Source of the DNA: Octopus sinensis
Lineage: Eukaryota
Direction of reading: 5' to 3'
NCBI RefSeq assembly: GCF_006345805.1
Contig: NC_043010.1
Location: forward strand, 15,748,001-15,812,000
DNA length: 64,000 bases
Part shown: positions 4,904-56,030 of the stretch, in pieces
How positions within the stretch are numbered: position 1 is the stretch's first letter
Layout of the letters: the number at the start of each line of letters is the position of its first letter
The notes under the pieces: model-generated
Databases searched by the model: none
What the model was told of the DNA's origin: nothing
Seen by the model: the letters and a program-made list of their open reading frames with translations, nothing else
Translations under genes and position numbers: made by a program

Positions 4904-6612
4904 AATAATAATAATAATTAATTCGTTTATTGGCCAAAAGGGCTAACAAAAATCAATTAAAACATGTAGGGACAAAATACAGGACGAAAGTTACAAAAGG
5001 GTTTTGTCCGTTTAAAAAAAAAGTCATTGTAAAAATATGAAATAACAACGAAAATATGTAACAATTAAAACTACCAATAGGGGGATGCGCTTCGAAAGGT
5101 TACTCATGGAAAAACCCATAAAAGCCACGGGAGCCTGGTCAAAAAGGGGCCAGAGAGCCCTTTTCTCCTTTTATATTTACCTTTTTGTATCACAGGTGTA
5201 ACTTCAGAATTGGTCCGTTCATACTGGCCATTCTTGCGACATTCACCCATCTCTCAATAAACTTGCTATGAGACAGCACTTCCCTCTTGCAGCTCTGTCA
5301 AAGAGACGAGCTGTGGAAAGTCGTGTCTGACAAAACACAACCACACGCTTGAGATGCATGTCTGCACATCAGTAACCACGGTATGCCAAGGCCCCCGTTC
5401 AGCGGCCGTTGACAGCAGATGGAGCGCCTGACCAGTGGTACCTGACCCTTCCACAAAAAGTCAAAGAGCAAGCGCACCAGCTTGGCCAACCAGTGGTCGA
5501 GACAAGGGACGACAGTCAATCGGTAATAGATGACGGATGCGATGTACGCATTCGCCACCTCTGCTCGACCTTTCAGGGACAGCTTCCTCTCGGCCCATTT
5601 CTGGGTGAGATTGGCCACCCTGTTCATCACTTCTTCCCAGTTTTTATCCACCTGGAGATCCGGACAAAACCAGACCCTGAGCAGTTTAACGGGTCCGTCT
5701 GTCCAGCGCCCTACAACACTGTTGGACGGCATGGACTTGCCTCTCCAGGTGCCCACAGACTTTTCTGCATTAATCTTTGCACCTGTCACCGCTTCGTACT
5801 CGTTTAGCGTCTCGCCAATCAGGTCAATGTGCCCATGGCTCAACACCATCACGGTGACGTCGTCGGCATAGGCAGACATGCTGTTTCCACCTCCTAGATC
5901 ACGCAGGATACCCCTCAAAGCCTCCTACTTGCGCAGTAATGGCTCGAGAGTCAATATGTGAAGGAGGAAGGAGAGAGGGCATCCTTGGCGAACCGAATGC
6001 AAAATGTCAAACAGCTCCAAAAGGTGACCGTTCACCCGTATCACCGAGCAGATGTTGCTGTACGAAGAAGCGATCCACCCGTGGAAGACTGGACCAAAAC
6101 CGGCTGCCTTGAGAACAGCTGCTAGGTATCGATGGTCGACACTATCGAAGACTTTACTTTGATCTAAATTGATCAAAGCCCCACCCGTGCCAGCTTCATT
6201 ACCCACCCTCTCTATGATGTAGCGCATGAGATGGAGATTATCGTGTATCGACCTGGTCGGCACGGCGCATGTCTGCACCTTGCCAATCAGCTTGTCCACA
6301 ACAAGCGCCAATCTCTTGGCTAGCATCTTGGCCAAAATCTTCAACTCTGCATTGAGCAGAGTGATGGGCCTAAAGTTCCCTATAATGTCCCCTTTGTTTG
6401 GGTCCTTTCTCAGCAAAGCCACCTCTCCTCGACAAACAAAAGCAGGAATTCTCCCGTTTTGTTGCCAGTTGCAGTAGACGTTTGCCAAGAGGCCCGCAAA
6501 CAAGTCTGGCATTGAAGTGTAAACCCGGCGATCTGCCTCTCGTGCAGTTCTTCATTGCTTCCTCCACTTCTCAGGCAGATATCGGTCTTTCGCAGCACTC
6601 CGCCTCGCTGTC
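4904..6612 (-). mobile_element. L1/Tx1-clade LINE, 5'-truncated, frameshifted, internally deleted RT
   Basis: ORFs 5925-6512 and 5298-5918 carry NFRPITLLN.ELKILAK, LDQSKVFDSVDH, VRQGCPLS, AYADD, KLSLKGRAEV and GGLG. 3' UTR ends ccaataaacgaa plus (ATT)n. Confidence 0.92.
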
Positions 6613-8837: not shown

Positions 8838-11800
8838 AAACAAAAGAAAAAAATTCCTTCAAAGGGATGTAAATAAATTGTCAATTGTATTTAATTCATT
8901 TAATATTTGTATGTATGTATGTATATATATATATCATCATCATCATCATTTAACGTCTGCTTTCCATGCTAGCATGGGTTGGACGGTCCAACTGGGGTCT
9001 GGGGAGCCCGAAGGCTGCACCAGGCCAGTCAGATCTGGCAGTGTTTCTACAGCTGGATGCCCTTCCTAACGCCAACCACTCCGAGAGTGTAGTGGGTGAT
9101 TTTATGTGCCACCGACACAGGTGCCAGACGAGGCTGGCGAACGGCCACACTCGGATGGTGTTTTTTATGTGCCACCGACACAGGTGCCAGACGAGGCTGG
9201 CAGACAGCCACGCTCGGATGGTGTTTTTATGTGCCACCGACACAGGTGCCAGATGAGGCTGGCGAACGGCCACGATCGGATGGTGTTTGTTACGTGCCCA
9301 CAGCACGGAGGCCAGTCGATGCGGTACTGGCTACCGCCACGTTCGGATGGTTTTCTTGTGTGCCACCGGCACTGGTACCACAAAGATACAAATTCCATTG
9401 ATGTTCATCTATTTTGATTTGTTTTGATTTGATATATATATATATATATCATAAAACAAAGAAAAAACTATTCCTTCAAAGGGATGTAAATAAATTGTTA
9501 GTTTCATCATCATCATCATACTCCAGTTTTTTAAATCTGGGCTTTTGTCCCCGTTAATGGGGGTGGCCAGATCTACCTCAATGCCATAACAACAGAAGTA
9601 GGCAGGTGCAGCCCACCACAACCCTTGGGGTGGCTGGTGCCCATTCTCCTTTGCTATCATGAGGCTTTTTTGGAGCTGGATTTTCTATGGGGAGCAGGCC
9701 CTTGTTTATCCCCAACCTCAGTTTCTAGACATGAGTGGTCCTGAGACCAAGGCTTCTATGATGATTTTTAAGAAATGTGATAGAAAACTAGCTCAAGAAG
9801 GCAGGGACGCTACTCCCTGAGACCCCTGTCGAAGGCCCCCTACCCTAGTTTGTCAATTGTATTTCTCTATTTCATTTAATATTTGTGTGTGTGTGCGTCG
9901 TATATGACCATGAAATTGCACCTAGAAAGTTACCCGTTACCGTCTGAGGCATAAATCCAGGAAACATTGTTTATGGAAAACCAGCAGTTACTCGTGCATG
10001 CCAGCCACCCCCTCTCCATGTCAGTGACATTACCCAAGGGAAAGGCAAAGACCAATACAATTTGGTACCGGTGATGTCACAACATATTTCTACAGCTGAG
10101 TGAACTGAACCAACATGAAATAAAGTGTCTTGCTCAAGAACACAACACACAGCCCAGTCCGGGAATCAAACTCACTACCCCGTGATTGTAAGCCCAATGC
10201 TCTAACCACTGAGCCATGCATATTTACAACCATGCTATCTAGCAGCTAAGCACATCATCATCATCATCATCATTGTTTAACGTCCGCTTTCCATGCTAGC
10301 ATGGGTTGGATGGTTCAACTGGGGTCTGGGAGGCCAGAAGGCTGCACCAGGCCCAGTCTGATCTGGCAGTGTTTCTACAGCTGGATGCCCTTCCTGACGC
10401 CAACCACTCTGTGAGTGTAGTGGGTGCTTTTTATGTGCCACCAGCATGGGGGCCAGATGAGGCTGGCAAACAACCACGATCAAATGGTACTTTTTACGTG
10501 CCACCGGCATGGAGGCCAATCGGGGTGGCGCAGGCAACGGCCACATTCGAATGGTTCTCTTACATGCCACCGGCACTGGTACCACAGCTATAATTTCCAT
10601 TGATGTTGATCAATTTATGAATCTCAGGAGATGGGGCTAAAAGTCTAGAAAAAGCTGGATGTGTTGTTTCTTATCACTGTTTTGGTTTTTTGACAAATCA
10701 ACAAGAGAGAACTTTTGTCAGAGAAGCAAGAGAAAAGAAAGCAGGAGGAATGAATCTATTGAAGCGGAAACCATTGTATCTCTCTGAATATAAATGGCAA
10801 AATTTCTGCGTGTGTGTCCTTTACACAAATCCACAATTTTTCAGTTAGAGGGCTCACACTTTCTATGGTCATTCAAGACCATCCAAGGGTGGTTGTGCAC
10901 ATCTTTACATTTTCCCAGTCACCCTGCAAAGCCATTAAAAAAATCAATAGAAGTGACTTTTTTGTGAATTTTCTATCCAAAACCCAATCAAAATGCCCGA
11001 AACTTGATACGCTTAGCCCTTTAGTGTTCTGATTATTCTATCAAACACAATGCTTATTGATTCCCATTGATTTGAATTAATCATGCATTATCCCATATCT
11101 TCAAGATCTTGATGGTGTAATTACCTAATGTAGAATAATATTGTAGGGTAGGTGTGAGAGCCTGGATCAGGTCAGTTTGAACATAAAACAGATTAACTAT
11201 TTTGACCGGATATGGCCGGTTTAAATACTAAAGGGTCAAAGCTCATCAGCAATTAAGTGAGAAGATTACATTGTCTTGTTAAACCTCCTTCCCCAGTGTA
11301 CATAACCCACACCTGATATACCCTTATTCTTTTACTTGCTTGTCATTTGACTGTGGCCATGCTGAAGCACCGCCTTTAGTCGAACAAGTCAACCCCAGGA
11401 CTTATCCTTTGTAAGCCTAGTACTTATTCTATCAGTCTCTTTTGCCAAACCGCTAAGTTATTGGGACGTAAACAAAACCAACGTCAGTTGTCAAGTGATG
11501 GTGGGGGGGAGGGGTATACACACACAAATACATACATACATATATACATATATATATATACCAATTATATACTTTTTATTTATTATTTTGTACATTACTT
11601 AATCATTGGTATATGTTATATTTAATTACGTGCAGGTGGCACGTAAAAAGCACCCACTACACTCGCGGAGTGGTTGGCATTAGGAAGGGCATCCAGCTGT
11701 AGAAACTCTGCCAGATCAGACTGGATCCTGGTGCAGCCCCTGGCTTCCCAGACCTCAGTCGAACTATCCAACCCGTGCTAGCGCGGAAAACGAACGTTAA

Positions 11801-18845: not shown

Positions 18846-20537
18846 ATCACCATCATCGTTTAACGTCCGTTTTTCATGCTGGCATGGGTTGGGCAGTTTG
18901 ACTGGGGTCTGGCAAGCCAGGAGGCTGCACCAAGGTCCAATCTAATCTGGCAATGTTTCTACAGCTTGACGCCCTTCCTAACGCCAACCACTCCGAGTGT
19001 GTAGTGGGTGCTTTTGACATGCCACCAGCACAGGAGCCAGTCGGTGCGAGGTGGCTGGCAACGACCACGTTCAGATGGTGCTTTTTACATGCCACCAGCC
19101 CAGGATCCAGTCCGGCATCGCTAGCATCAGCCACATTCAGATGCTGCTTTTGACATGCCACCACCAGCACAGGAGCCAGTCGGGGCAAGGGAGCTGGCAT
19201 CAACCAGTTCAGATGGTGCTTTTACATGCCACCAGCATGGGGAGCCAGTCAGGTGGATCTGGCAATGACCCACACATGAATAGTGCTTATTGCATGCCAC
19301 CAGCATGGAAGCCAGTCAGGCAGCACTGGTAATGACCCACGCATGAATAATGCTTATTGTGTGCTACCAGCATGGGAGCTAGTCAAGCAGAACTGGCATC
19401 GGCCACAACTACAATTTCCATTTGATTGCAGTTTCATTTGACTTTGATTTTGATGTACTTGACTCAATAGGTCTCCTCAAGCACAGCATGTCACCCTACA
19501 ATCCAAAGGTACTTTTTTAAGTGGGCTGCTTATGCGACACTGGTGTAGGGTACAGCTGTGATCTCACTATACTTGCCAGGTCTCCTCAGTCACAGCATAT
19601 CTCCAGAGGTCTCAGTCTTTCGTCATTGCCTCTGTGAGGCCCAACATTCAAAGGTCATCCCATGTCTTCCTGGGTTTCCCTCTACCACGGGTTCCTTCTA
19701 CTGTTTGAAAGTGGCACTTCTTCACACAGCTCTCCTCTCCTCATCCATCCATAGTACATGACCATACCAGCACAATCATCTCTCTTGCACGTCACATCTG
19801 ATGCTTCTTATGTCCAACATTTTTCTCAGGGCGCTTACACTGTCGTGTGTACACACTGACATTACATATCCAGCAGATCATGTTAGCTTCATTTCTTTCA
19901 AGCCTACGCATGTCTTCAGCAGTCATGGCCCATGTTTTACTGTCATGAAGCATGGTAGTTCGCACACATATGTTGTACAATCTACCTTTCACTCTGAGTG
20001 AGAGGCTTTTGTCACCAGTAGAGGTAGGAGATTTCTGAACTTTGCCCAGACTATTCTTATTCTAGTAATAATGCTCTATGAGCATCCCCCCCCCCATTAC
20101 AGACTCGGTCACCTAGGTAGCGGAAGCTATCAACTACTTCTAGTTTCTCCCATCTGGCATGTGATGGAATCTGTTTTCTGAGCATCTGTGGTGTTTATTG
20201 TCCCTGTGCATCTGCCGCACACAAAAGCTATCTTCCCGATTAACCTTCCTTTGATGTTGCAGCATCTCTTATGCATCCATAGCTTACACTGGGTACAGCT
20301 TATGGAGTTTCTACCTATACCTTTTCTACAGATTGAGCAGGGCCATCTACCTAAAAGGATTTGTGATGTGTTTGCCTTGCTACTTACTAGGACTTTGGTT
20401 TTTGCGACATTGACTCTAAGACTCTTCGATTCTAAACCTTGCTTCCACACCTGAAATTTCTTTTCTAGTTCTGGTAGTGATTCTGCTATGACAGCCAGGT
20501 CATCAGCATAGAGGAGCTCCAAGGGGCAACCTGTCTT
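18846..20537 (-). mobile_element. RTE-clade LINE, 5'-truncated (YADD to C-terminus, modular 3' UTR, (GAT)n tail)
   Basis: ELLYADD at 20499-20510, VNVAKTK, GRLY..CVRTTMLH.S.TW..LERNE. A C4HC3 motif lies at 20208-20339. Confidence 0.92.
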
Positions 20538-20554
20538 ATATATATATCCATGAG

Positions 20555-21350
20555 TTAAGGAATGGAATAGATAAAATCTAGGCTGCATATGTTTCATAGC
20601 AAGTGGACCCTCAGAAGTGGTAAATATCCAAGCGAGGTTTACACCAGAGGTTACTCATCAGGCCAAGGGTATCTTGGTTAAATGAAGATTACATTGTCAT
20701 TAGGAGGCTCATGTTAACACATGGAGGATTCAATCAGAATGCGTATATATATCTCCACTCAAAACTGTGCTCTGTACGCATTCTGATAAAATCCTCCATG
20801 TGTTAATAGGGGCCTCCTAATGACAATGTAATTTTCATTTAATCAAGATATCCTTGACAATCAAAAGGCAAGTGAAAATCAAAATCAAAATCGATCAACA
20901 TCAATGGAAATTGCAGCTGTGATACTAGTGCCGGTGGTATGTAAGAAAACCCTCCGAACATGGCCGTTGCCAGTGCCACCCTGACTGACTTCGTGCCGGT
21001 GGCACGTAAAAAGTACCATCCGATCGTGGCCGTTTGCCAGCCTCGTCTGGCACGTAAAAGCACCCACTACACTCACAGAGTGGTTGGCATTAGGAAGGGC
21101 ATCCAGCCGTAGAAACATTGCCAGATCAGACTGGGCCTGGTGCAGCCTTCTGGCTTCCCAGGCCCCAGTTGAACCGTCCAACCCATGCTAGCACGGAAAG
21201 TGGACGCTAAACGAGGATGATGATGATGATGATGATCCTTGGCGTGAAGAATAGCCTGCAATATACACCTCGCTTGGATATTTACCACTTCTGAGGTCCC
21301 ACTCACTATGAAGCATATGCGACCTAGATCTTATCTACTCCATTCCTTAA
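20555..21350. mobile_element. Fold-back MITE (arms ~195 bp, TTAA-GG...CC-TTAA, Kolobok-like ends) split by an RTE fragment
   Basis: 20555-20745 is the reverse complement of 20775-20857 plus 21238-21350. Confidence 0.8.
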
Positions 21351-24969: not shown

Positions 24970-26786
24970 TCTAGCTAGACCGCTTCAAATCCTTTTCCAG
25001 GAGTCCCTCAGGATGGGGAAACTACCAAAAAAAAACTAAAAGAGGGAATAATATGCCCTATCCATAAGGGAGGAAGCAGGACAGAGGCTAGGAATTATAG
25101 ACCTGTCTCCCTGACCTCCCACATCAGTAAAGTCATGGAGCGCATTGTCAAGAAAAGACTGATTGAGTTCCTTGAGGACAACGACCTGCTCTCTGACACC
25201 CAACATGGCTTTCACCCGGGAAGGAGCTGTCTTACACAGCTTCTGTGACATTATGACTGGGTACTGAAGCAATTAATGAACTGCGCAAAGGTGGATGTGG
25301 TATACCTCGACTTTGTGAAGGCATTTGACAAGGCCGACTATGGAATGATATGCCACAAAATACGGGGACTCGGCATCACAGGTAAAGTCGGAGAATGGCT
25401 GCATGATTTCCTGAAGGACATAAGCCAAACTGTAGCAGCCAGCGGAGCTCTCTCCACAGAGACACCAATAGTGAGTGGAGTGCCCCAGGGCACTATGCTG
25501 GGGCCACTGCTTTTCATGGTAGCCCTATCGGATCTGCCATCAGTGACAGAGGCAGCCATGCTTACCAGCTGTACCGACGACACAAAAGTCAGTCAGCAAG
25601 GAAACCGCTGATGCTACGCTCTTACACAAAGATCTAGATGCCATCTATACATGGGCTGAGGATAACAACATGCAATTTAACCCTTTAGTGTGCGCATTAT
25701 TCTACCAAAATTAATGCTTTTTCATCCACATTGCCTTGAACTAATCAGGCATTATCTTGTAGCTTTGAGATTCTGATGAGGTAGCTGTTAATTTTTAAAA
25801 TGATATTGTAGGGTTGGTGTGAGAGACCAGATTTGGCCATTTTGAACATAAAACAGGCAGAATACTTTTGGCCGGATATGGCCAGTTTAAATGCTAAAGG
25901 GTTAATGCAAGTAACTTCCAGGCTCTCCTCTACCATTTAAGCACTGCTCAGGAATCACGACATCAGTACACTGGACCTAGCAGAGCAACGATCCCAGAAT
26001 CAAATATGGTGCATGATCTTGGAATAGAAATGAGCAACAATGCCTCATTTCACACGCATATCAACAAAATGGTAGCAGTATCCAGAAGACTGGCCGGTTG
26101 GATTCTGAGAATCTTCTAGACGAGGGACCAAGAAACTATGATGACACTATGGAAGTCATTTATCCTCAGCTGACTGGACTACTGCTCTCAGCTATGGTCA
26201 CCTTATACTACAAGGACAATAGCAGAGCTTGAAGCAGTCCAACAACATTACACAAAGAAAATTGCATCAATGGAACGACTGAGCAACTGGGACAGATTGA
26301 CAGAGCTACAACTCTATTCCCTGGAATGAAGGCGTGAGAGGCATGCAGTGATATATATATGGAAGATATTGGAAGGACTGGTACCAAACTTTGGAATAAA
26401 GAGCTATACCAGACCACGAACAGGACGTCACGGTGCTGTCCCCATTGTGCCGACTGCTTTATCTTGGGTAAGGACGATGTACTGCAATAGCTTGAGTTTC
26501 AAGGGTCCACAGCTGTTTTACTGTTTGCCGAAGCATCTGAGGAGCCTCCATGGAGTGGATGTAGACGTTTTCAAACCTGAACTTGATCTCTGGCTCGCCG
26601 AGATCCTGGATGAGCCAATATCTAAGCAAGACACTCAAAAGAAAGCAGTAGCATCGAACTCTATCCTTCACCAAAAGCCGCTCCGACAAAGGTGGAGAGT
26701 GGAAAGATGATCACAATGGCGGTGCTCCAGCATGGCCACAGTCATTGGACTGAAACATATAGAAAAAAAAGAAAAGAAAAAAGAAA
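24970..26786 (+). mobile_element. CR1/L2-group LINE, decayed RT and 3' end
   Basis: NYRPVSLTSHISK, QHGF..GRSC, YLDFVKAFD, SGVPQGTMLGPLLF, TDDTK, YIWKILEGLVPN. Multiple stops. Tail ggcggtgctccagcatggccacagtcattggactgaaaca plus an A-rich run. Confidence 0.92.
25681..25901. mobile_element. piggyBac-like MITE (221 bp) inserted in the CR1-like RT
   Basis: TTAA|CCCTTTAG...CTAAAGGG|TTAA. Removing it restores the LINE frame M-Q-F-N-A-S. Older copy at 11017-11235 and a right half at ~12655-12807. Confidence 0.9.
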
Positions 26787-27967: not shown

Positions 27968-28222
27968 GATATACACACGTATATATATTTATATATATAT
28001 ACATATATACGTGTATTTACCCACACACGCATATATCCTATATACATATATATACATATATGCTTACATACATACATACATACATATATATATATATATA
28101 TTGTGACGTATATTTGTCATTTGAATATGGCTAACCCCTAAGGGTGTAGCCCCAGGAAGACACCTCCTCCAGCTGGCTATAGACACACTTTCTGTGCCCT
28201 ATCACTCTGAGATTTATCATTG

Positions 28223-31775: not shown

Positions 31776-32309
31776 CAGATATAGGGTGAAAGATAATTTA
31801 ATAAAATCAACAAATTTCACCTACTAGTATTTCGGTATGGAAAAGGACCATATTTGGTAAAAACTTATATAATTATAACAATAAGGGTTTTGCAACAAGT
31901 TGCTTGATCACATAACGAAAATTTTAGAAATAGCAGCCAAAGGACTACTATTTCCTTTTTCTACAAAAATATGCCTCCACAGACAACAATATTTGTAGCT
32001 CACAAATACGTGTGTGTATATATCATCATCATCATTTAACATCCGCTTTCCATGCTAGCATGGGTTGGACAGTTCAACTGGGGCCTGGGAAGCCAGAAGG
32101 CTGCACCAGGCCCAGTCTGATCTGGCAATGTTTCTACGGCTGGATGCCCTTCCTAACGCCAACCACTCCATGAGTGTAGTGGGTGCTTTTTACGTGCCAC
32201 CGGCACAGGTGCCAGACGGGGCTGGCAAACGGCCACGGTCGGATGGTGCTTTTTACGTGCCACCGCACAGAGGCCAGTCGAGGCGGTGCTGGCAACGGCC
32301 ACGATCGGA

Positions 32310-32348
<39 letters not shown>

Positions 32349-32351
32349 CAC

Positions 32352-32386
<35 letters not shown>

Positions 32387-33214
32387 CGTACACACATATA
32401 TATATATAATAATAATAGTAAAAGCAAAATTCTGTCTGTCCATCTGGGACCCTTGTATCCCAGTCTACATTTGCTCCACATCATAGACATATTGTACTTT
32501 TTGGGAATTAGCCAGGATAATCCCAGGATTGAAAAATCTGTCCTTCATTTGGTTCTGGAACATCCAGCATTAGGATCTGATTTAAAAGCATTTGGGTTGC
32601 TATTTCAAGCAGGTAAAGCTACCGTAAGACGTGTTCGGGGTCATCGTCTTATTAAGAGAGGCAAACAAGAGTTACCTCCCTTAGACTAAAGTTATACAAA
32701 GGAATTTAGTGGTTCTTTTATCTTTTTCAGTCATCCGACTGTGGCCATGCTGGGGCACTGCCTTGAAAGATTTTAATCGGAAAAAGATGACACCATTTCT
32801 TTCTTTTTTATGCTTGGTACTTTTTTTATAGGCCTCTTTTACTGAACCGCTAGGTCACATGAACTTAAACACACCAATACCTATTTCTTTCCTACCTACA
32901 AGGGGCTAAACATAGCGGGGACAAACAAGGACAGACAAAGGTATTAAGTCGATTAGATCGACCCCAGTGCGTAACTGGTACTTTATTTATCGACCACGAA
33001 AGGATGAAAGGCAAAGTCGACCTTGGCGGAATTTGAACTCAGAACGTAACGGCAGACAAAATACTGCTAGGCATTATGCCCGGCGTGCTAACGTTTCTGC
33101 CAGCTCGCCGCCTATACCAGTTATCAAGTGGGGGGTGGGGACAAACAGACACAAAGCCACAATATACATACATATATATATATATCTTCTATAATTGTTT
33201 CTCTTATTAATTTA

Positions 33215-33834: not shown

Positions 33835-34866
33835 ATCATCATCATCATCGTTTAATGTCCATTTTCTATGCTGGCATGGGTTGGATGGTTTGATTCAGGT
33901 CTGGAAAGCCAGCAGCTGCACCAGGCTCCAGTCTGATCTGGCAGAGTTTCTACAGCTGGATGCTCTTCCTAACGCCAACAACTCTGGGAGTGTAGTGGGT
34001 GCTTTTTACGTGCCACTGGCATTGGAGCCAGTTGTGGCGGGGCACTGGCATCAACTACATTCAGGTGGTGCATTTTATGTGCCACCAGCACTGATCACAG
34101 CTACGATATTGGTTTTACTTGACTCAACAGGTCTTCTCAAGCACATCATATAGCCCGATGCATCAAGGGTACTATTAAACAGGCAGGACTTGCAACACTG
34201 GCATCGCCCATGGCTGTGATCTCACTTTAGTTACTGGGTCTTCTCAGTCACAGCAAATCTCCAAAGTTCTCGATCTCCTGTCATTGCTTCTGTGAGGCCC
34301 AACTTTCAAAGGTCATGCTTCATCACCTAATCCTTTGTCTTCCTGGAGGCTACCTCATTGACAGGTTCCTTCCACAGTTAGGGTGCGTCACTTACTCACA
34401 TAGCTGCCTTCATCCATACATAACACATGACCATACCAGTGCAGTCGTCTCTCTTTCACCCACATTTGAGTCTTCTTATGTCCAAATTTTCACTCAGAGC
34501 CCTCACACTCTGTTCTGTATGCACACTGACATTACACATCCAGCGGATTATACTAGCTTCATTTCTTTCAAGCCTACACATGTCCTCAGCAGTCATGGCC
34601 CATGTTTCACTGCTGTGCAGCATGGCAGTTTGCACACATGCATCATACACTCTACCTTTCATCCTGTGCGAGAGGACCTTTGTTGTCAGCAGAGGTAGGA
34701 GTTCCCTGAACTTTGCCCAGGCTATTCTCATTCTAGCCGTTACACTCTCAGAGCAACCACCCACACTACAGGCTTGGTCACCTAGGTAGTGGAAGCTATC
34801 AACTACTTCTGGCTTTTCCTCCTGGCATGTGATGGAATCTGTTTTCTGTACATCTTCAGTGTTGGT
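33835..34866 (-). mobile_element. RTE LINE 3' fragment, same family
   Basis: VVDSFHYLGDQ..RIAWAKFRELLPLL..ETWAMTAEDM, then the 3' UTR and (GAT)n tail. Confidence 0.9.
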
Positions 34867-35036
34867 TAGACTTGATTGATCAAATCTAGGGCACATATGT
34901 AAATAGAAGAATGATTATGTGTGATCCATTGACCCATGATGGATGTGCTGTACCTTCATCAAATTGAAACCAGCTTTGTCTTTTCTGACATGCTAGTCTT
35001 CAATGGTATAGTTATTTCATTCCATGAAATAACTAT

Positions 35037-37085: not shown

Positions 37086-37399
37086 GGTAAGCCTTGTTTG
37101 AACGAACTTATGATCAAAGTAGGCCAGGGCTGTATCCGTGAAGGAGTATATTGTTTTTTTTTATATGCAGAAATGTATGTTTATGTATGTGATTGTTTGC
37201 ATATATTTTTTCAAACGAGTGCATTTTAGAAGGGTAATGAAGGAGAAAGAAATAGAAAGGAGTGAACTGCTTTAAAATGGAATAGAAAGACAGAAAGAGG
37301 GACAAAAAGAGAATTTATGTACCTGTCCCATCAAAACCTGATGAATCTAAAAACAACTTTGCTGATTTCTACATGAAACAATTTGAAGAAAGAAAAGTT

Positions 37400-39122
37400 T
37401 GCCATACGACGGCGAGAAAGGTGGCTCTCCTAACTCAGACCTGGTCTGAGCGGAAGCTGTCCTTGAAAGGGAGGGTGGAGGTTACAGAGGTGTTTATTGC
37501 CTCTGTAATCACTTACCGCCTGACCGTCATGCCTTGCCCCAATTTGTGGCTGAACAAGCTGGAATGCATACTCTTTCGCTTTTTGTGGAGGGGCAGCAGA
37601 CCTCTTGTAAAGCGCTCTATCTGCTGCCAAAAGCTGTTGAAGGGTGGGTTAGGGATGCCATGGCTAAAAATGCGCGGACATGCGCTCAGGCTTAGGCACC
37701 TCTGGCTTTACCTGGACGGTGAGCAGGTGTGGTCTCCATTCGGCAAGCTGTTATTTCCACAGTTCACATCGTTTACCAAACTGAACCCATGGATCAAGTG
37801 TAGACCGAAGTTGGGCGTGTGGCATGCAGAGTGCCATTAGGCACTCGGGCTTCTCTCCCAGTCGGGCAACGCTGGTGGCGGGGGTACTACCTCGTTCTTC
37901 TATAGAGGGTTAGTAGAGTTTAAGTGTGACGACGTCCTGGGAGAAACCCTGGGCTTCAACGAAGATCAACTGGCCAGCCTGTTCCATAGAGCATTCGGTC
38001 CGGGGCCTATGGATAATTACCAAAAGTCCCTGGCCTGGCAATGTTACAGAGGAGCTTTACCGGTTCGAGATAAGCTCTTTAGACATGGGTGTGCACCTTC
38101 GCTGGTTTGTGCAAGATGCGAGAGGGACAGTGAAACTGTCCTGCACGCGATTGTCCAATGCCCCAAGGTGACTGAACTCTGGGCTTATGTCGAACACCTG
38201 CTGTCACATTCGAGAAGAGTACAACTGTCGAGCGAATCTGTAATTAAGATCGTTCCGGTAGTTGCTGTGGTGAAAGAGGTAGTATGGAAGACGAGAGTGA
38301 AAGGAATTGCAACAGGCATGTTCATCTCCAGTCTTGAGCTAATCAACTTTTTCGTTTTCCACATGAAACGAAAAATAAGGCTGGGTGGAAGTCTATAGCA
38401 AGTATGTTGCGAGTGAAAGAACCTGTTTAATCGAGAATGTAAAAAAGGAGAAAGCAAAGTCTTCAGTGTGAGTATGTGGTTTGTGGGGTCAACCGCGTCC
38501 TCCGCTTCATTTTGTGTTAATCACTCACTCTCATTTAATTATATATATTTTAATTGTTTGTTTATTCATACGTTTCGTCTCATTCGATACCCTGACCCCA
38601 ACGTTTGTTTTGTCTGTTCCAATATTGTCCCCTCTTTGGACTTTTTCGGTTTGAACGGCAGTTTTTTCTAGCAGTGTCATATGAAATTGTCACCCATAAT
38701 TATGACCCTAGTATCGATCTATTGCATTTCAATCTATTGCATTTCAATCTGTTTTAGGGTTATGGTTAGGGGTGGGGGGAAGGGTATCTTTTTGTCTTCA
38801 CAAATGTAAATAAACCCAATCTGTTTCTTAAACTAGGGACATATTCATACGGCACAGAATGTTTTCACCTCAATAGACGTCATTGATTGGTTGAAATTGA
38901 AGATAAAAGACAACAAATATCTTACAAACTATAGAATTTTCTCAATAAAGCCAAGAGACAAAGATGTTTTATAAACACATTCTACCAGTATACGAAGTTT
39001 AAAATTTTTTAGTTACTTAGAAATTATGTTAAAAACTGCCGTTCAAACCGAAAAGATCCCGTTTGTTTTGTCTGTCCCCGTATGGTCCCCTCTTTTCTCA
39101 ACCTTATGGTGAATAAAGAAAT
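37400..39122 (+). mobile_element. Second L1/Tx1-clade LINE fragment (RT thumb, zinc-finger C-terminus, 3' UTR)
   Basis: RKLSLKGRVEV..FRFLW..GGLGMP, then AWQCYRGALPVRDKLF..CARC..ETVLHAIVQC (CCHC). 3' end aataaagaaatt. Interrupted by a MITE at 38638-39060. Confidence 0.88.
38638..39060. mobile_element. MITE with ~30-bp TIR (GGGATCTTTTCGGTTTGAACGGCAGTTTTT); arm fragments at 27784-27922 and 29170-29345
   Basis: TIRs are visible and the interior is shared among three loci. Superfamily not determined. Confidence 0.85.
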
Positions 39123-39831: not shown

Positions 39832-40115
39832 AAACCTAATCATGATCGTTCGACTTGCTAGAAATAGCATTTAAATCGTCCTAATATAGCAATGCAGATT
39901 AGGATACACAAAAAGGCAGGATGGTCATGGCTGGAACACTTTGATCATAGGTTTACTCAATCAAACCTAATCATGATCGTTCGACTTGCTAGAAATAGCA
40001 TTTAAATCGTCCTAATATAGCAATGCAGATTACGATACGCAAAAAGGCAGGATGGTCATGGCTGGAACACTTTGATCATAGGTTTACTCAATCAAACCTA
40101 AGCTGAGGCTGAACA
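39832..40115 (+). repeat. Family E retroposon 3' part, here as a 131-bp tandem duplication. Related pieces at ~1000-1090, 1840-1900, 4200-4375, 14280-14900(-), 15210-15320(-), 35280-35420(-), 36220-36350(-), 59920-60005
   Basis: Recurrent gacttgctagaaatagca..ggatggtcatggctggaa..tttgatcatag..gctga..aaacaac. Confidence 0.7.
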
Positions 40116-40447
40116 ACTATACATAGTTTTAAACTCTTCCACTAAATCTTTTCCCTCCATCTCACTAATTCTTTCCTCTTCTATTTGTTTTTTTTTCTCT
40201 CCCGTTAATCTACTTTAAATCTCGTACTCATTATTATCTCCATCCTTACTTCTCTTTTTTTTTTTATTTACTTTCTTCTCGTTGTTTACTTAACACTCTT
40301 CCTTTTATAACATCACTCTCTCCATCCTCACTCTCTTTTTCCCTCCAATTTCTCTCTCCATCCTCACTCTCTTTTTCCCTCCAATTTCTCTCTCCCTCCC
40401 TCTCTCACATTGACTGAGTAGAGTAATCCTCCACCTACTCTTCTCTT

Positions 40448-40695
40448 TCTCCGTCACTCTCTCTCACACTCCTTTCTCCGTCACTCTCTCTCTCACACTC
40501 CTTTCTCCGTCACTCTCTCTCACACTCCTTTCTCCGTCACTCTCTCTCTCACACTCCTTTCTCCGTCACTCTCTCTCACACTCCTTTCTCCGTCACTCTC
40601 TCTCACACTCCTTTCTCCGTCACTCTCTCTCTCACACTCCTTTCTCCGTCACTCTCTCTCTCACACTCCTTTCTCCGTCACTCTCTCACACACTC
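40448..40695. repeat. 27-29-bp minisatellite, 9 units (tttctccgtcactctctc(tc)acactcc)
   Basis: Direct reading. Confidence 0.95.
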
Positions 40696-40911
40696 ACAGA
40701 CGGTTCAGAAGTCTTATATTACAACAGCCTCCACCTCAGCCTCTCATCCCACACTTTTCCTTGTTGACACACACACACTCTGTCTCGCTCTCACTCTTTC
40801 ACTCTCACACGACCAGCGCGCACATGCCGAGAGCAAGAATAAGCTACGTTAATACACTATAACTAAGGTGGTTGCCTGTTTTAGCTTTTATTTCCTGAAT
40901 GGATCTACATC

Positions 40912-41062
40912 ATGTCGACCCCGTCTCAAGACCCTTACCCGGATAAGGAGAGAGTCAGTAGCACTGAGTTACCCATGGAAGAACGTAGCCAGACCCGAGC
41001 ACGTCCCGTGCCACCCGTACCCGAGAGACCAGCCTCTATCAGGGTGTCTAAACATGGCCAAG
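40912..41062 (+). CDS. Candidate start-codon exon of an unidentified host gene (MSTPSQDPYPDKERVSSTELPMEERSQTRARPVPPVPERPASIRVSKHGQ, phase-1 donor)
   Basis: catcATGt start, 50 open codons, consensus donor AAG|GTAAGT at 41062/41063. Non-repetitive and CpG-richer than the flanks. Possible upstream acceptor gttttag| at 40884. Absent from the ORF track because the unspliced ORF is only 52 aa. Confidence 0.6.
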
Positions 41063-41417
41063 GTAAGTGACACACACATTTCAAATACGCACTTAACGAT
41101 TTATGTTCTAGCATTTCGTTTGAAAGGACAATTGAGTGAAATCCGTGTGAACACGTACGCGTAGAAAATGTTGATCGGGGAAGGATGTGGACTGGATTTA
41201 TGGATGCAGATGTGTCTGGGTAATTATAAAACAGCAATTATATACCATCAACTGTTTTTCAGTTTCTCTCTCTCTAAGGTACGCGCACGCGCACACATCC
41301 TCTGTGTCTCGCTCGCGCGCACACACATATATGTCTATTGCCGAGTTAAACTCCGCCTATACACACACACACACACACACACATTATATATATATACATA
41401 CATACACGCACACACAT

Positions 41418-41847
41418 AATCGTCACATATATCACACGCACACTCGTCACAATATATAAACACACACAGACACACTCGTCACAATATATACACACGCACA
41501 CACACACTCGTCACAATATATATACACGCACACACACTTGTCACTATATATACACGCACACACACATACTCGTCACAATATATACACACGCACAGATACA
41601 CTCGTCACAATATATATACACACACACACGTACTCGTCACAATATATACACACGCACACCACTCGTCACAATATATATATATACACACGCACACACTCGT
41701 CACATATATACACATATACTCGTCACAATATATACACACGCACACACTCGTCACAATATATATACACACACATACTCGTCCCAATATATACACACACACA
41801 CGTACTCGTCACATATATACACACGCACACACACACACTCGTCACAA
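41418..41847. repeat. ~30-bp minisatellite, 15 units (ctcgtcacaatatatacacacgcacaca-like)
   Basis: Direct reading. Confidence 0.95.
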
Positions 41848-43394
41848 TGTAGGACGCACCCATGTTATTATTATGTGACACAGATCTATGTATAAATGCA
41901 AATGCGTACAGAGATGTGTGTTTATGCGTTGGTTTCATGTTTTATACGTGTGTAATGTGTGTGTGTATAATAAATTGTGATTATGTATTTGACTTGATAT
42001 GTTTATAAACCGTCTCCAATTAGCTCCACACCTTTCTGAGTATCTGCATCACTAATTGATAATTGTTCAATGGTGATTTGCCCGGTGTTTTTCACTCAGC
42101 TAGATCGATGGCTATATATGAAGGTCCCTACATCTATATCTGTTATTGTAGTAAATATATTCTTGTATTTTTCGGTAGACAATCGACTTAGAGGTGTGTC
42201 TGCTTTTATATTTACTGTTGGTGCTTCTCTTTGTGTGTTAACACAATTTTGGATAATGTGTAGAATATTTTATAATATAGGAAACAGTGACTGAATAAAC
42301 CGATTTCGTGTGTGTGTGCGGGCTATGTCTAATATCTATTATAAATTTTTGACAGTGACTTCGAAGTCACGTGTGTGTGTGTTAACGTTAACAGAATTTT
42401 ACTCAGTATTTATTTAGTTGAAAACATTAAACGTTTTCATACAAAGAAAATTGTACAAACGTATATATAATATATACATACATGTATGTATGTGTGTGTT
42501 GATGTATGTGTATATTATGCTTGTATAAATATGTAACTAGTACCGAATGATCGCCTATATATATATATATATATGTATATAGATATATAGATAGAGAGAG
42601 AGAGCAATAAGAAAATGGAGAGGATCAATAGGTGGTTCGTCAACTTTTAGACATTATATTATGTTAACTTATTTATTTACTAAAATGACAATTACAAGAA
42701 TATACATACATGTATAACATATTATGCTTTACATATAAAATATATTAATATATAAAGATACCAGTGATTATTAGAATATAACATACAGGAATATAAATTG
42801 GGAAAAATGCAATTAGCTTTCGGAAAACACCCACCAAAATTTAACTCGGTTACACATCAGCTGACCAAATAACTTTTTAACCAAGTTGGGTTTTTTTATG
42901 ACACCTAAAAAAAAAAACCCTAGTACCTGAAACTGACATTCCTAACTAGACACACCTAACCACAAAGTTTTTACACACACACACACACATACTCTCTCTC
43001 TTTACTTGTTTCAGTCATTTGACTGCGGCCATGCTGGAGCACCGCCTTTAGTCGAGCAACTCGACCCGGGACTTATTCTTTGTAATCCCAGTACTTATTC
43101 TATCGGTCTCTTTTTGCCGAACCGCTAAGTTACGGGGACATATGCACACCAGCATCGGTTGTCAAGCGATATTAGATGGGACAAACATACACGCACACAC
43201 ATACACACACACACACATAAATATATATATATACGACGGGCTTCTTTCAGTTTCCGTCTACCAAATCCACTCACAAGGCTTTGGTTGACCCGAGGCTATA
43301 GTAGAAGACACTTGCCCAAGGTGCCATGCAGTGGGACTGAACCTGGAACCATGTGGTTGGTAAACAAGCTACTTACCACACAGCCACTCCTGCG

Positions 43395-52391: not shown

Positions 52392-52509
52392 AATTTGTTT
52401 ATCCACTTAATTTCCTCTGTATATAAACACACACAAACACATATGCATTTAAATATACTTATAAGTATACATACTTACATGATACATATATATATCTTTG
52501 AATAGTAAA

Positions 52510-55500
52510 GCACAAAAGCACATTATAACATAAAGGGAGCTGTTGATGGGTTAACCGAGCACAAAAGCACATTATAACATAAAGGGAGCTGTTGATGGGT
52601 TAACCGAGCACAAAAGCACATTATAACATAAAGGGAGCTGTTGATGGGTTAACCGAGCACAAAAGCACATTATAACATAAAGGGAGCTGTTGATGGGTTA
52701 ACCGAGCACAAAAGCACATTATAACATAAAGGGAGCTGTTGATGAGTTAACCGAGCACAAAAGCACATTATAACATAAAGGGAGCTGTTGATGGGTTAAC
52801 CGAGCACAAAAGCACATTATAACATAAAGGGAGCTGTTGATGGGTTAACCGAGCACAAAAGCACATTATAACATAAAGGGAGCTGTTGATGGGTTAACCG
52901 AGCACAAAAGCACATTATAACATAAAGGGAGCTGTGATGGGTTAACCGAGCACAAAAGCACATTATACATAAAGGGAGCTGTTGATGGGTTAACCGAGCA
53001 CAAAAGCACATTATAACATAAAGGGAGCTATTCATGGGTTAACCGAGCACAAAAGCACATTATAACATAAAGGGAGCTGTTGATGGGTTAACCGAGCACA
53101 AAAGCACATTATAACATAAAGGGAGCTGTTGATGGGTTAACCGAGCACAAAAGCACATTATAACATAAAGGGAGCTATTCATGGGTTAACCGAGCACAAA
53201 AGCACATTATAACATAAAGGGAGCTGTTGATGAGTTAACCGAGTACAAAGGCACATTATAACATAAAGGGAGCTGTTGATGGGTTAACCGAGCACAAAAG
53301 CACATTATAACATAAAGGGAGCTGTTGATGGGTTAACCGAGCACAAAAGCACATTATAACATAAAGGGAGCTGTTGATGGGTTAACCGAGCACAAAAGCA
53401 CATTATAACATAAAGGGAGCTGTTGATGGGTTAACCGAGCACAAAAGCACATTATAACATAAAGGGAGCTGTTGATGGGTTATCCGAGCACAAAAGCACA
53501 TTATAACATAAAGGGAGCTGTTGATGGGTTAACCGAGCACAAAAGCACATTATAACATAAAGGGAGCTATTCATGGGTTAACCGAGCACAAAAGCACATT
53601 ATAACATAAAGGGAGCTATTCATGGGTTAACCGAGCACAAAAGCACATTATAACATAAAGGGAGCTGTTGATGGGTTAACCGAGTACAAAGGCACATTAT
53701 AACATAAAGGGAGCTGTTGATGGGTTAACCGAGCACAAAAGCACATTATAACATAAAGGGAGCTATTCATGGGTTAACCGAGCACAAAAGCACATTATAA
53801 CATAAAGGGAGCTGTTGATGAGTTAACCGAGTAAAGGCACATATTATAACATAAAGGGAGCTGTTGATGGGTTAACCGAGCACAAAAGCACATTATAACA
53901 TAAAGGGAGCTGTTGATGGGTTAACCGAGCACAAAAGCACATTATAACATAAAGGGAGCTGTTGATGGGTTAACCGAGCACAAAAGCACATTATAACATA
54001 AAGGGAGCTATTCATGGGTTAACCGAGCACAAAAGCACATTATAACATAAAGGAGCTATTATGGGTTAACCGAGCACAAAAGCACATTATAAATAAAGGG
54101 AGTGTTGATGGGTTAACCGAGCACAAAAGCACATTATAACATAAAGGGAGCTGTTGATGGGTTAACCGAGTACAAAAGCACATTATAACATAAAGGGAGC
54201 TGTTGATGGGTAACCGAGCACAAAAGCACATTATAACATAAAGGGAGCTGTTGATGGATTAACCGAGCACAAAAGCACATTATAACATAAAGGGAGCTGT
54301 TGATGAGTTAACCGAATACAAAGGCACATTATAACATAAAGGGAGCTGTTGATGGGTTAACCGAGCACAAAAGCACATTATAACATAAAGGGAGCTGTTG
54401 ATGGGTTAACCGAGCACAAAAACATTATAACATAAAGGGAGCTGTTGATGGGTTAACCGAGCACAAAGCACATTATAACATAAAGGGAGCTGTTGATGGG
54501 TTAACCGAGCACAAAGCACATTATAACATAAAGGGAGCTGTTGATGGGTTAACCGAGCACAAAAGCACATTATAACATAAAGGGAGCTATTGGGTTAACC
54601 GAGCACAAAAGCACATTATAACATAAAGGGAGCTGTTGATGGTTAACCGAGCACAAAAGCACATTATAACATAAAGGGAGCTGTTGATGGGTTAACCGAG
54701 CACAAAAGCAATTATAACATAAAGGGAGCTATTCATGGGTTAACGAGCACAAAAGCACATTATAACATAAAGGGAGCTATTCATGGGTTACCGAGCACAA
54801 AAGCACATTATACATAAAGGGGGAGCTGTTGATGGGTTAACCGAGCACAAAAGCACATTATAACATAAAGGGAGCTGTTGATGGGTTAACCGAGCACAAA
54901 AGCACATTATAACATAAAGGGAGCTGTTGATGGGTTAACCGAGCACAAAAGCACATTATAACATAAAGGGAGCTGTTGATGGGTTAACCAAGCACAAAAG
55001 CACATTATAACATAAAGGGAGCTGTTGATCAGTTAACCGAGTACAAAGGCACATTATAACATAAAGGGAGCTGTTGATGGGTTAACCGAGCACAAAAGCA
55101 CATTATAACATAAAGGGAGCTGTTGATGGGTTAACCGAGCACAAAAGCACATTATAACATAAAGGGAGCTGTTGATGGGTTAACCGAGCACAAAAGCACA
55201 TTATAACATAAAGGGAGCTGTTGATGGGTTAACCGAGCACAAAAGCACATTATAACATAAAGGGAGCTGTTGATGGGTTAACCGAGCACAAGCACATTAT
55301 AACATAAAGGGAGCTGTTGATGGTTAACCGAGCACAAAAGAACATTATAACATAAAGGGAGCTGTTGATGGTTAACCGAGCACAAAAGCACATTATAACA
55401 TAAAGGGAGCTGTTGATGGGTTAACCGAGCACAAAAGCACATTATAACATAAAGGGAGCTGTTGATGGGTTAACCGAGCACAAAAGCACATTATAACATA

Positions 55501-56030
55501 AAGGGAGCTGTTGATGGGTTAACCGAGCACAAAAGCACATTATGACATAAAGGGAGCTGTTGATGGGTTAACCGAGCACAAAAGCACATTATGACATAAA
55601 GGGAGCTGTTGATGGGTTAACCGAGCACAAAAGCACATTATGACATAAAGGGAGCTGTTGATGGGTTAACCGAGTACAAAAGCACATTATAACATAAAGG
55701 GAGCTGTTGATGGGTTAACCAAGCACAAAAGCACATTATAACATAAGGGGAGCTGTTGATGGGTTAACCAAGCACAAAAGCACATTATAACATAAAGGGA
55801 GCTGTTGATGGGTTAACCAAGCACAAAAGCACATTATAACATAAAGGGAGCTGTTGATGGGTTAACCGAGCACAAAAACACATTATAACATAAAGGGAGC
55901 TGTTGATGGGTTAACCGAGTACAAAAGCACATTATAACATAAAGGGAGCTGTTGATGAGTTAACCAAGCACAAAAGCACATTATAACATAAAGGGAGCTG
56001 TTGATGGGTTAACCGAGCACAAAAGCACAT
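52510..56030. repeat. 49-bp tandem satellite, about 72 monomers (gcacaaaagcacattataacataaagggagctgttgatgggttaaccga)
   Basis: Period read directly (52511 to 52560). Near-identical monomers. Confidence 0.98.

Follow-up and report, generated by a model that had tools for sequence, protein, structure and literature searches.

Two tandem arrays whose units are otherwise unrelated carry the same hexamer, CGTCAC, in the same orientation on both sides of one exon. Does this arrangement represent a regulatory device, or is it what remains when two short segments are amplified by chance? The question is raised by a 64-kb stretch of Octopus sinensis DNA (contig NC_043010.1; the window in what follows, and positions are window coordinates), in which the first coding exon of an SH3D19-like gene lies between an upstream array, A, and an array in intron 1, B. 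The initial annotation had regarded both, built on CGTCAC, as a homotypic enhancer or a methylation-sensitive tuning knob. To address this we compared the window with the corresponding loci of Octopus vulgaris (L002, OX597827.1), Octopus bimaculoides (L003) and Argonauta hians (L001). The comparison makes it probable that A and B are ordinary young variable number tandem repeats (VNTRs), driven by slippage in low-complexity promoter and intron DNA, and that the multiplicity of the motif is a by-product of amplification.

Array anatomy and motif counts

The elements considered first are the following.

40445..40695, plus strand: array A, nine units of 27/29 bp, CTTTCTCCGTCACTCTCTCTC(TC)ACACTC, with CGTCAC in 9/9; its 3' end lies 217 bp upstream of the ATG
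41359..41403, plus strand: compound (AC)n/(AT)n microsatellite that runs into array B, seen by Tandem Repeats Finder (TRF) and in the sequence
41404..41852, plus strand: array B, 15 units of 23-34 bp, CTCGTCACAATATATACACACGCACACA, in intron 1, starting approximately 340 bp downstream of the splice donor

By TRF, array A covers 40445-40695 (8.7 copies at 95% matches; the period is 27/29 or, read as a dimer, 56 bp), and array B covers 41404-41848 (14.8 copies at 75% matches and 14% indels; the period is 32). If the arrays are split unit by unit, the core of array A reads cCGTCACt in all nine units, and the core of array B is an intact tCGTCACa in 13 of 15 units, the other two reading TTGTCAC and CGTCCC. 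The units of array B follow the plan CTCGTCAC + (AT)n + (AC)nG(CA)n. Counts, coordinates and orientation are therefore as described initially, and both arrays consist of the head-to-tail units of about 10-100 bp by which a minisatellite or VNTR is recognized. The consensus units of A and B have no 6-mer in common besides CGTCAC, which agrees with their earlier description as unrelated in all other respects.

Exact copies of CGTCAC occur nine times in array A and 13 times in array B, all on the plus strand, and represent 22 of the 25 plus-strand copies in the window; the minus strand of the 64 kb holds six. Both strands together give 31 observed copies compared to 11.5 ± 3.5 expected from shuffles of the window. 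With the arrays removed nine copies remain, which is no excess. The background frequency of the pentamer CGTCA is about 1 per 1.9 kb, and the surrounding DNA is indeed CpG-poor, as had been noted, with a CpG observed/expected ratio of 0.55 for the window. The excess of CGTCAC is real, yet its 22 copies go back to two founder motifs, each amplified in tandem, and cannot be counted as 22 independent occurrences.

We further report a lone TACGTCACAATATATA on the minus strand at 28095-28110, where a long (TA)n array ends. Its resemblance to the core and AT-tract of the array B unit is probably due to chance.

Founder state and copy-number change across octopods

The window and the O. vulgaris locus are colinear, with approximately 2-2.7% substitutions in long blocks and many indels in repeats. 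The O. bimaculoides locus is colinear with the window through the whole region as well, and there exactly one copy of each unit is found between the same flanks, so that both arrays have a single-copy orthologous founder. The upstream founder, CTTTCTCCGTTACTCTCTCACACTC, is flanked by TCTTCT and TCTGCC, and its hexamer reads CGTTAC. The intronic founder, in which GCACACACACA is directly followed by CTCGTCACAATATAGGACGCACCC, is a single copy with CGTCAC intact, and the site of the second CpG of array B reads CATGCAC. Descent of the A and B units from one common unit was considered and rejected, as they share no 6-mer beyond TC(C)GTCAC and the flanks of the founders are unrelated.

In O. vulgaris array A has five units and a partial one, compared to nine in the window, and array B has 25 units (18 intact), compared to 15 (13 intact) in the window. 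The copy numbers thus differ at the same locus between colinear flanks, as is required of a VNTR. They were read from single assemblies and describe a difference between two sister-taxon genomes, not within a population; the initially proposed variability in copy number holds between genomes. The landmark units of array B come in the same order in both genomes: a short first unit, TTGTCACT, CGTCCC, and a last unit running into AATGTAGGACGCACCC. The CGTCCC unit is present once in the window and three times in O. vulgaris. This shared order indicates that the arrays are orthologous and were altered by gains and losses of whole units. As the landmark units are shared, the expansion of the arrays precedes the split of the window genome and O. 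vulgaris, and whole units have been gained and lost since then. An artefact of assembly was also considered and is rejected, because two independent assemblies contain both arrays, with common internal landmarks.

At the Argonauta locus neither unit was found. Its upstream CT-rich tract aligns only weakly and contains nothing at the position of the array A founder. Its intron 1 can be aligned to the Octopus intron 1 at low-complexity matches only. A check of conservation in other octopods, which had been proposed at the outset, accordingly turns out negative: Argonauta has neither motif at the corresponding places, and O. bimaculoides has CGTTAC upstream. In these alignments an enhancer homotypic for CGTCAC is unsupported by conservation. 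Nor is there support for the hexamer as the organizing principle of the locus: each array stems from one single-copy founder, and the upstream founder carries CGTTAC in O. bimaculoides.

Amplification of units without CGTCAC

Further amplifications, none of them with the hexamer, are found next to array A and in intron 1.

39832..40101, no strand assigned: 131-bp tandem duplication (TRF), 2.1 copies, 98% identical, no CGTCAC, just upstream of the CT-rich tract
40130..40444, plus strand: CT-rich, G-depleted low-complexity tract with 3-6% G on the sense strand, including the 36-bp array at 40316-40406
40316-40406, plus strand: 36-bp array (TRF), 2.6 copies, without CGTCAC, specific to the lineage of the window
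52509-56030, intron 1: 49-bp satellite (AGCACAAAAGCACATTATAACATAAAGGGAGCTGTTGATGGGTTAACCG), 72 copies, 96% identity, without CGTCAC

The 131-bp duplication is also present in O. vulgaris (L002 9048-9318), and O. bimaculoides reads single copy there, with no repeat reported by TRF. The 36-bp unit is single-copy in O. vulgaris and has a partial match (20/36 bases) in O. bimaculoides. The 49-bp satellite has 82 copies in O. vulgaris (L002 21632-25650); O. bimaculoides possesses approximately 1.3 copies and an inverted partial copy (L003 16623-16722). It is a further lineage-specific expansion of a near-single-copy founder in the same intron. All three units (131, 36 and 49 bp) have at most about 1.3 copies in O. 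bimaculoides. In Argonauta the conserved blocks CTTGTTGACA and TGTCTCGCTCTC, which in Octopus are separated by just a short CA-repeat run, enclose about 600 bp of CA-rich 23/61-bp minisatellites (L001 9281-9832), an independent expansion in the same promoter. As units without CGTCAC were amplified in this lineage at the very same locus, the amplification process is not specific to CGTCAC.

Intron 1 of Argonauta contains three TGACG pentamers less than 800 bp after exon 1 (L001 10266, 10377 and 10808). Two of them read GTGACG and account for two of only four CGTCAC/GTGACG occurrences in the 58-kb Argonauta locus. Their orientation is opposite to that of the Octopus motifs, with which they cannot be aligned. 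The trio is probably due to chance in a relatively CpG-rich stretch, yet it is the one hint of recurring half-sites near the exon.

The shared hexamer compared to chance

To judge the statistical weight of a hexamer common to two such units we used shuffles and neighboring sequence. If the units of A and B are shuffled with their dinucleotides preserved, a common word of at least six bases occurs in 33% of trials and a common CpG-containing 6-mer in 9%. Random neighboring segments of the same sizes have a common 6-mer in 19-25% of trials, and 22 of 105 minisatellite pairs in the window share a 6-mer on the same strand. In O. bimaculoides the founders do not have this hexamer in common (CGTTAC upstream vs CGTCAC in the intron). 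A hexamer common to two such units is within chance, and it cannot bear the weight first placed on it.

A comparison of CGTCA density with other minisatellites had also been proposed. Among the roughly 70 other arrays surveyed in the fetched loci a single one bears the pentamer, which is therefore rare in the minisatellite units of these loci. This sole other CGTCA-bearing array, a 52-bp minisatellite of five units, belongs to O. vulgaris, where one of the later introns of the gene contains it (L002 68916-69175); its units are 99% identical and have one CGTCA each (GGGTCGTCATAAAC).

Origin of the arrays and evidence to the contrary

The observations can be combined into a simple course of events. 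Single-copy segments of approximately 28 bp were probably amplified in tandem in the O. vulgaris/O. sinensis lineage, giving rise to arrays A and B, with replication slippage and unequal exchange as the likely mechanisms. The founders lay in microsatellite-like, G-depleted DNA, one in the CT-rich tract upstream of the promoter, the other where intron 1 has a patch of (CA)n/(TA)n. By chance both held one CGT(C/T)CAC-type hexamer, which was then multiplied together with the unit. Whole units are still gained and lost, so that A and B are true VNTRs on either side of the exon with which the coding sequence of the SH3D19-like adaptor gene begins. We infer that the copies of the motif arose as by-products and were not selected as binding sites; in the sequences compared here the arrays give no sign of a conserved regulatory device.

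The composition of the region fits such a course. The G-depleted upstream tract is slippage-prone low-complexity DNA. The units of array B resemble plain compound (CA)n/(TA)n microsatellites insofar as they consist of (AT)n, (AC)n and one G outside the 8-bp core CTCGTCAC, and insofar as their length, 23 to 44 bp, changes via slippage in the (AT)n/(AC)n tracts. They differ in that every unit contains a non-repetitive core, which makes array B a minisatellite with a definable founder. This core decays inside the array: it is altered in two of 15 units in the window and in seven of 25 in O. vulgaris, and the changes include the CpG transitions TTGTCAC and CTCATCAC.

Several observations argue against by-products of amplification as the whole explanation. 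The core CpG of array B is retained in 14 of 15 units in the window and in 23 of 25 units in O. vulgaris, and units without any CpG outside the core number 3/14 and 6/24, respectively. The CGTCAC core is therefore somewhat better kept than the second CpG of the unit, maybe because the core is the one part of the unit that is not microsatellite-like. A shared 6-mer that contains a CpG was found in only about 1% of random neighboring segment pairs, or in 4-12% if both segments carry a CpG, and CGTCA/TGACG is present in only one of the approximately 70 other minisatellites mentioned above. The shared CpG hexamer is accordingly a mildly unusual coincidence, though this test was chosen after the fact. 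The assembly of O. bimaculoides may under-represent tandem arrays; its single copies differ from the array consensus, which argues against a simple collapse without excluding it. Finally, the position of array A, adjacent to conserved promoter blocks and 217-468 bp upstream of the ATG, falls within promoter-proximal range. By analogy to VNTRs known to influence expression, a regulatory side effect of copy number would be plausible.

Promoter region and regulatory explanations

Between array A and the exon short blocks are conserved beyond the genus, and the four-species alignment defines one additional feature.

40696..40911, plus strand: proximal promoter or 5' untranslated region (5'UTR) with blocks conserved between Octopus and Argonauta

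The conserved blocks are located at about 40760-40769, 40822-40831, 40840-40845, 40856-40880 and 40889-40903. The block sequences upstream of the ATG (40690-40911) comprise GCATGCYGAG, TAAGCT, ACTAT..CTAAGGTGGTTGMCTGTT and ATTTCCTGMATGGA, and they are likely 5'UTR or core promoter. Between the arrays the CpG observed/expected ratio is 0.95. A count of CGTCA/TGACG between the arrays, 40696-40911 included, gives zero, so the conserved promoter blocks are without a half-site.

The pentamer CGTCA is an accepted half of the cAMP response element (CRE) and is bound by ATF1 with lower, context-dependent affinity (PMC4824076); on this point the initial annotation was right. Arrays A and B could then be seen as a cluster of CRE half-sites for CREB/ATF-type bZIP factors, variable in copy number and possibly sensitive to methylation, by which the SH3D19-like gene is tuned. 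In favor of this one may count the 22 CGTCA pentamers on the same strand within 1.4 kb, the promoter-proximal position of array A, the different copy number in sister genomes, and the CpG that each motif holds amid CpG-poor DNA. Relative to the ATG, nine half-sites lie 217-468 bp upstream and 13 in intron 1. Human VNTRs with transcription factor binding sites are known to act in this manner (PMC8096271). Common VNTRs of humans show an enrichment close to transcription start sites and are able to alter expression (PMC8096271), and expression-affecting VNTRs (eVNTRs) include one upstream of CSTB, one in the 5'UTR of MXRA7 and one in intron 1 of DPYSL4 (PMC8096271; PMC8024321). The octopus arrays resemble these eVNTRs: their units are head-to-tail, tens of bp long, and located within less than about 1 kb of the gene start and in the first intron, the copy number differs between close genomes, and the units bear a short motif similar to a transcription factor site, so that dosage could in principle follow length. 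The differences are that the octopus arrays are known from sequence alone, in two sister-taxon assemblies, and that the host is a cephalopod; a full-text literature search gave no octopus tandem-repeat study, and no such locus appears to have been characterized.

Compared to the CRE itself, TGACGTCA, which is bound by CREB/ATF (PMC4824076), the likeness is limited to the CGTCA of every intact octopus unit. The full palindromic site does not occur in the 64-kb window, which speaks against a strong CREB site, and the flanking bases do not extend it: measured by the generally known CRE, the extended sites GTGACGG and GTGACGA do not prolong the palindrome. The putative half-site is conserved neither in Argonauta, which lacks the motif, nor upstream in O. 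bimaculoides, which has CGTCAC once, in the intron, and CGTTAC at the upstream founder. Any CREB/ATF function would hence be new to one lineage. The absence of half-sites from the conserved promoter blocks, the expansion of units without CGTCAC alongside, the decay of motif copies inside array B and a shared hexamer within chance all point in the same direction, and we regard a CREB/ATF cluster as unlikely. A more specific version, in which the expansions created a lineage-specific cluster of weak half-sites, variable in copy number and flanking exon 1, and would make the SH3D19-like endocytic adaptor gene cAMP/CREB-responsive in O. vulgaris and O. sinensis and not in O. bimaculoides, must be considered less probable still; minisatellite growth would then have given rise to a new regulatory input.

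About as doubtful as the half-site cluster in general is an explanation by composition or structure, in which CGTCAC itself is of no importance. The CT-rich tract together with array A would act as a polypyrimidine/polypurine element, either nucleosome-disfavoring or triplex-forming, and array B as a Z-DNA-prone or CA-repeat (hnRNP L-type) element, with an influence on transcription or on the use of the splice donor that depends on length. The argument for it arises from the upstream base composition. In all four octopod genomes G makes up only 3-9% of the sense strand over a length of 400-1200 bp upstream of the ATG, compared to a background of about 19% (G-depleted stretches: window 40100-40700; L002 9400-9800; L003 9400-9800; L001 8600-9800). 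As the sequence is not conserved, this depletion in four genomes suggests that composition is maintained, and between O. bimaculoides and Argonauta there is a weak alignment of the CT-rich tracts at the same position. Array B is mostly alternating purine-pyrimidine and begins about 340 bp from the splice donor; in vertebrates, CA-repeat splicing enhancers with length-dependent effect are known. On the other side, both O. bimaculoides and Argonauta lack array B and still use the same exon, and array A is broken by A and G and forms no perfect mirror polypyrimidine tract. Mutation bias alone can sustain a low-complexity composition. The upstream composition thus appears to be kept while the sequence is not, which could be due to mutation bias or to some structural function in the promoter. 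A search of Rfam returned nothing above threshold, the sub-threshold matches being miRNA-like and located in the downstream TG/CA repeats.

That A and B are tandem repeats internal to a dispersed transposable element or to a satellite family beside the exon is very improbable: the window is indeed very repeat-rich, with copies resembling short interspersed elements (SINEs) and reverse-transcriptase fragments on both sides, but the founders lie in unique colinear O. bimaculoides sequence, and the units were found nowhere else in the window, 119 kb of O. vulgaris, 104 kb of O. bimaculoides and 58 kb of Argonauta (approximately 345 kb in total) or in exact-match scans of JGI metagenome contigs, so that a dispersed family is largely refuted within this limited sampling and the units, whose occurrence elsewhere was to be checked, are no common dispersed minisatellites.

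The first coding exon and its gene

The exon between the arrays had been called convincing from its sequence, and the comparison bears this out.

40912..41062, plus strand: first coding exon of the SH3D19-like gene, 50 codons and one base, phase 1, MSTPSQDPYPDKERVSSTELPMEERSQTRARPVPPVPERPASIRVSKHGQ
41063..41068, plus strand: splice donor GTAAGT, preceded by AAG, as read from the sequence

The exon peptide matches residues 1-50 of the O. vulgaris protein CAI9732557.1 (P0001, 1161 amino acids) by 100%. For the 50-residue query this protein was recovered by an exhaustive HMMER search; a word-indexed protein search gave nothing, a miss that is explained by its index. All four genomes of the alignment agree in the first five bases of the donor, GTAAG. 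All isoforms listed for O. vulgaris, O. sinensis and the current O. bimaculoides annotation begin at this exon, and the gene model of Argonauta hians opens with a homologous one (MSTSSQVPNK...RPVPPVPQRPAA...KHGQ). On these grounds the exon can be considered genuine. Exact look-ups of P0001, P0004 and the 52-residue read-through open reading frame matched no contig. Only exon 1 of the gene is within the window; as exon 2 lies outside, intron 1 is longer than 22.9 kb, and the annotated gene span in O. sinensis is 101.7 kb.

The assignment to SH3D19 is derived from the whole protein. CAI9732557.1 has C-terminal SH3 domains (Pfam SH3_1, SH3_9, SH3_2), and the name SH3 domain-containing protein 19 is given to relatives in molluscs, a hemichordate and vertebrates. 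A proline-rich N-terminal part, several C-terminal SH3 domains and best matches to SH3D19 proteins are all present, as expected of an SH3D19-like protein. The labels "nek3", "titin" and "mediator subunit 26" given to the octopus gene are automatic misnomers.

In the 40 kb upstream of the first coding exon no further host exons were found. This part of the window contains reverse-transcriptase-like fragments (5298-6512, minus; 20130-20597, minus; 25276-26710, plus; 34456-34896, minus; 37373-38398, plus) and many SINE-like copies with 63-70-bp internal tandem repeats, e.g. at 8950-9420, 19000-19400 and 32065-32409.

Meaning of the locus

A general caution follows from these results, namely that motif counts within tandem arrays are not independent evidence of function. 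No result reported here favors a regulatory explanation, which could be addressed with the natural alleles of one, five and nine copies. If it were true, the locus would be a rare documented case in a cephalopod of a repeat expansion that creates a transcription factor input. What the comparison of the octopod genomes offers in any case is a small and clean example of the birth of minisatellites, with the founders kept in one species, expanded and changing arrays in two others, and unrelated arrays in place of the A and B units in the distant relative Argonauta.

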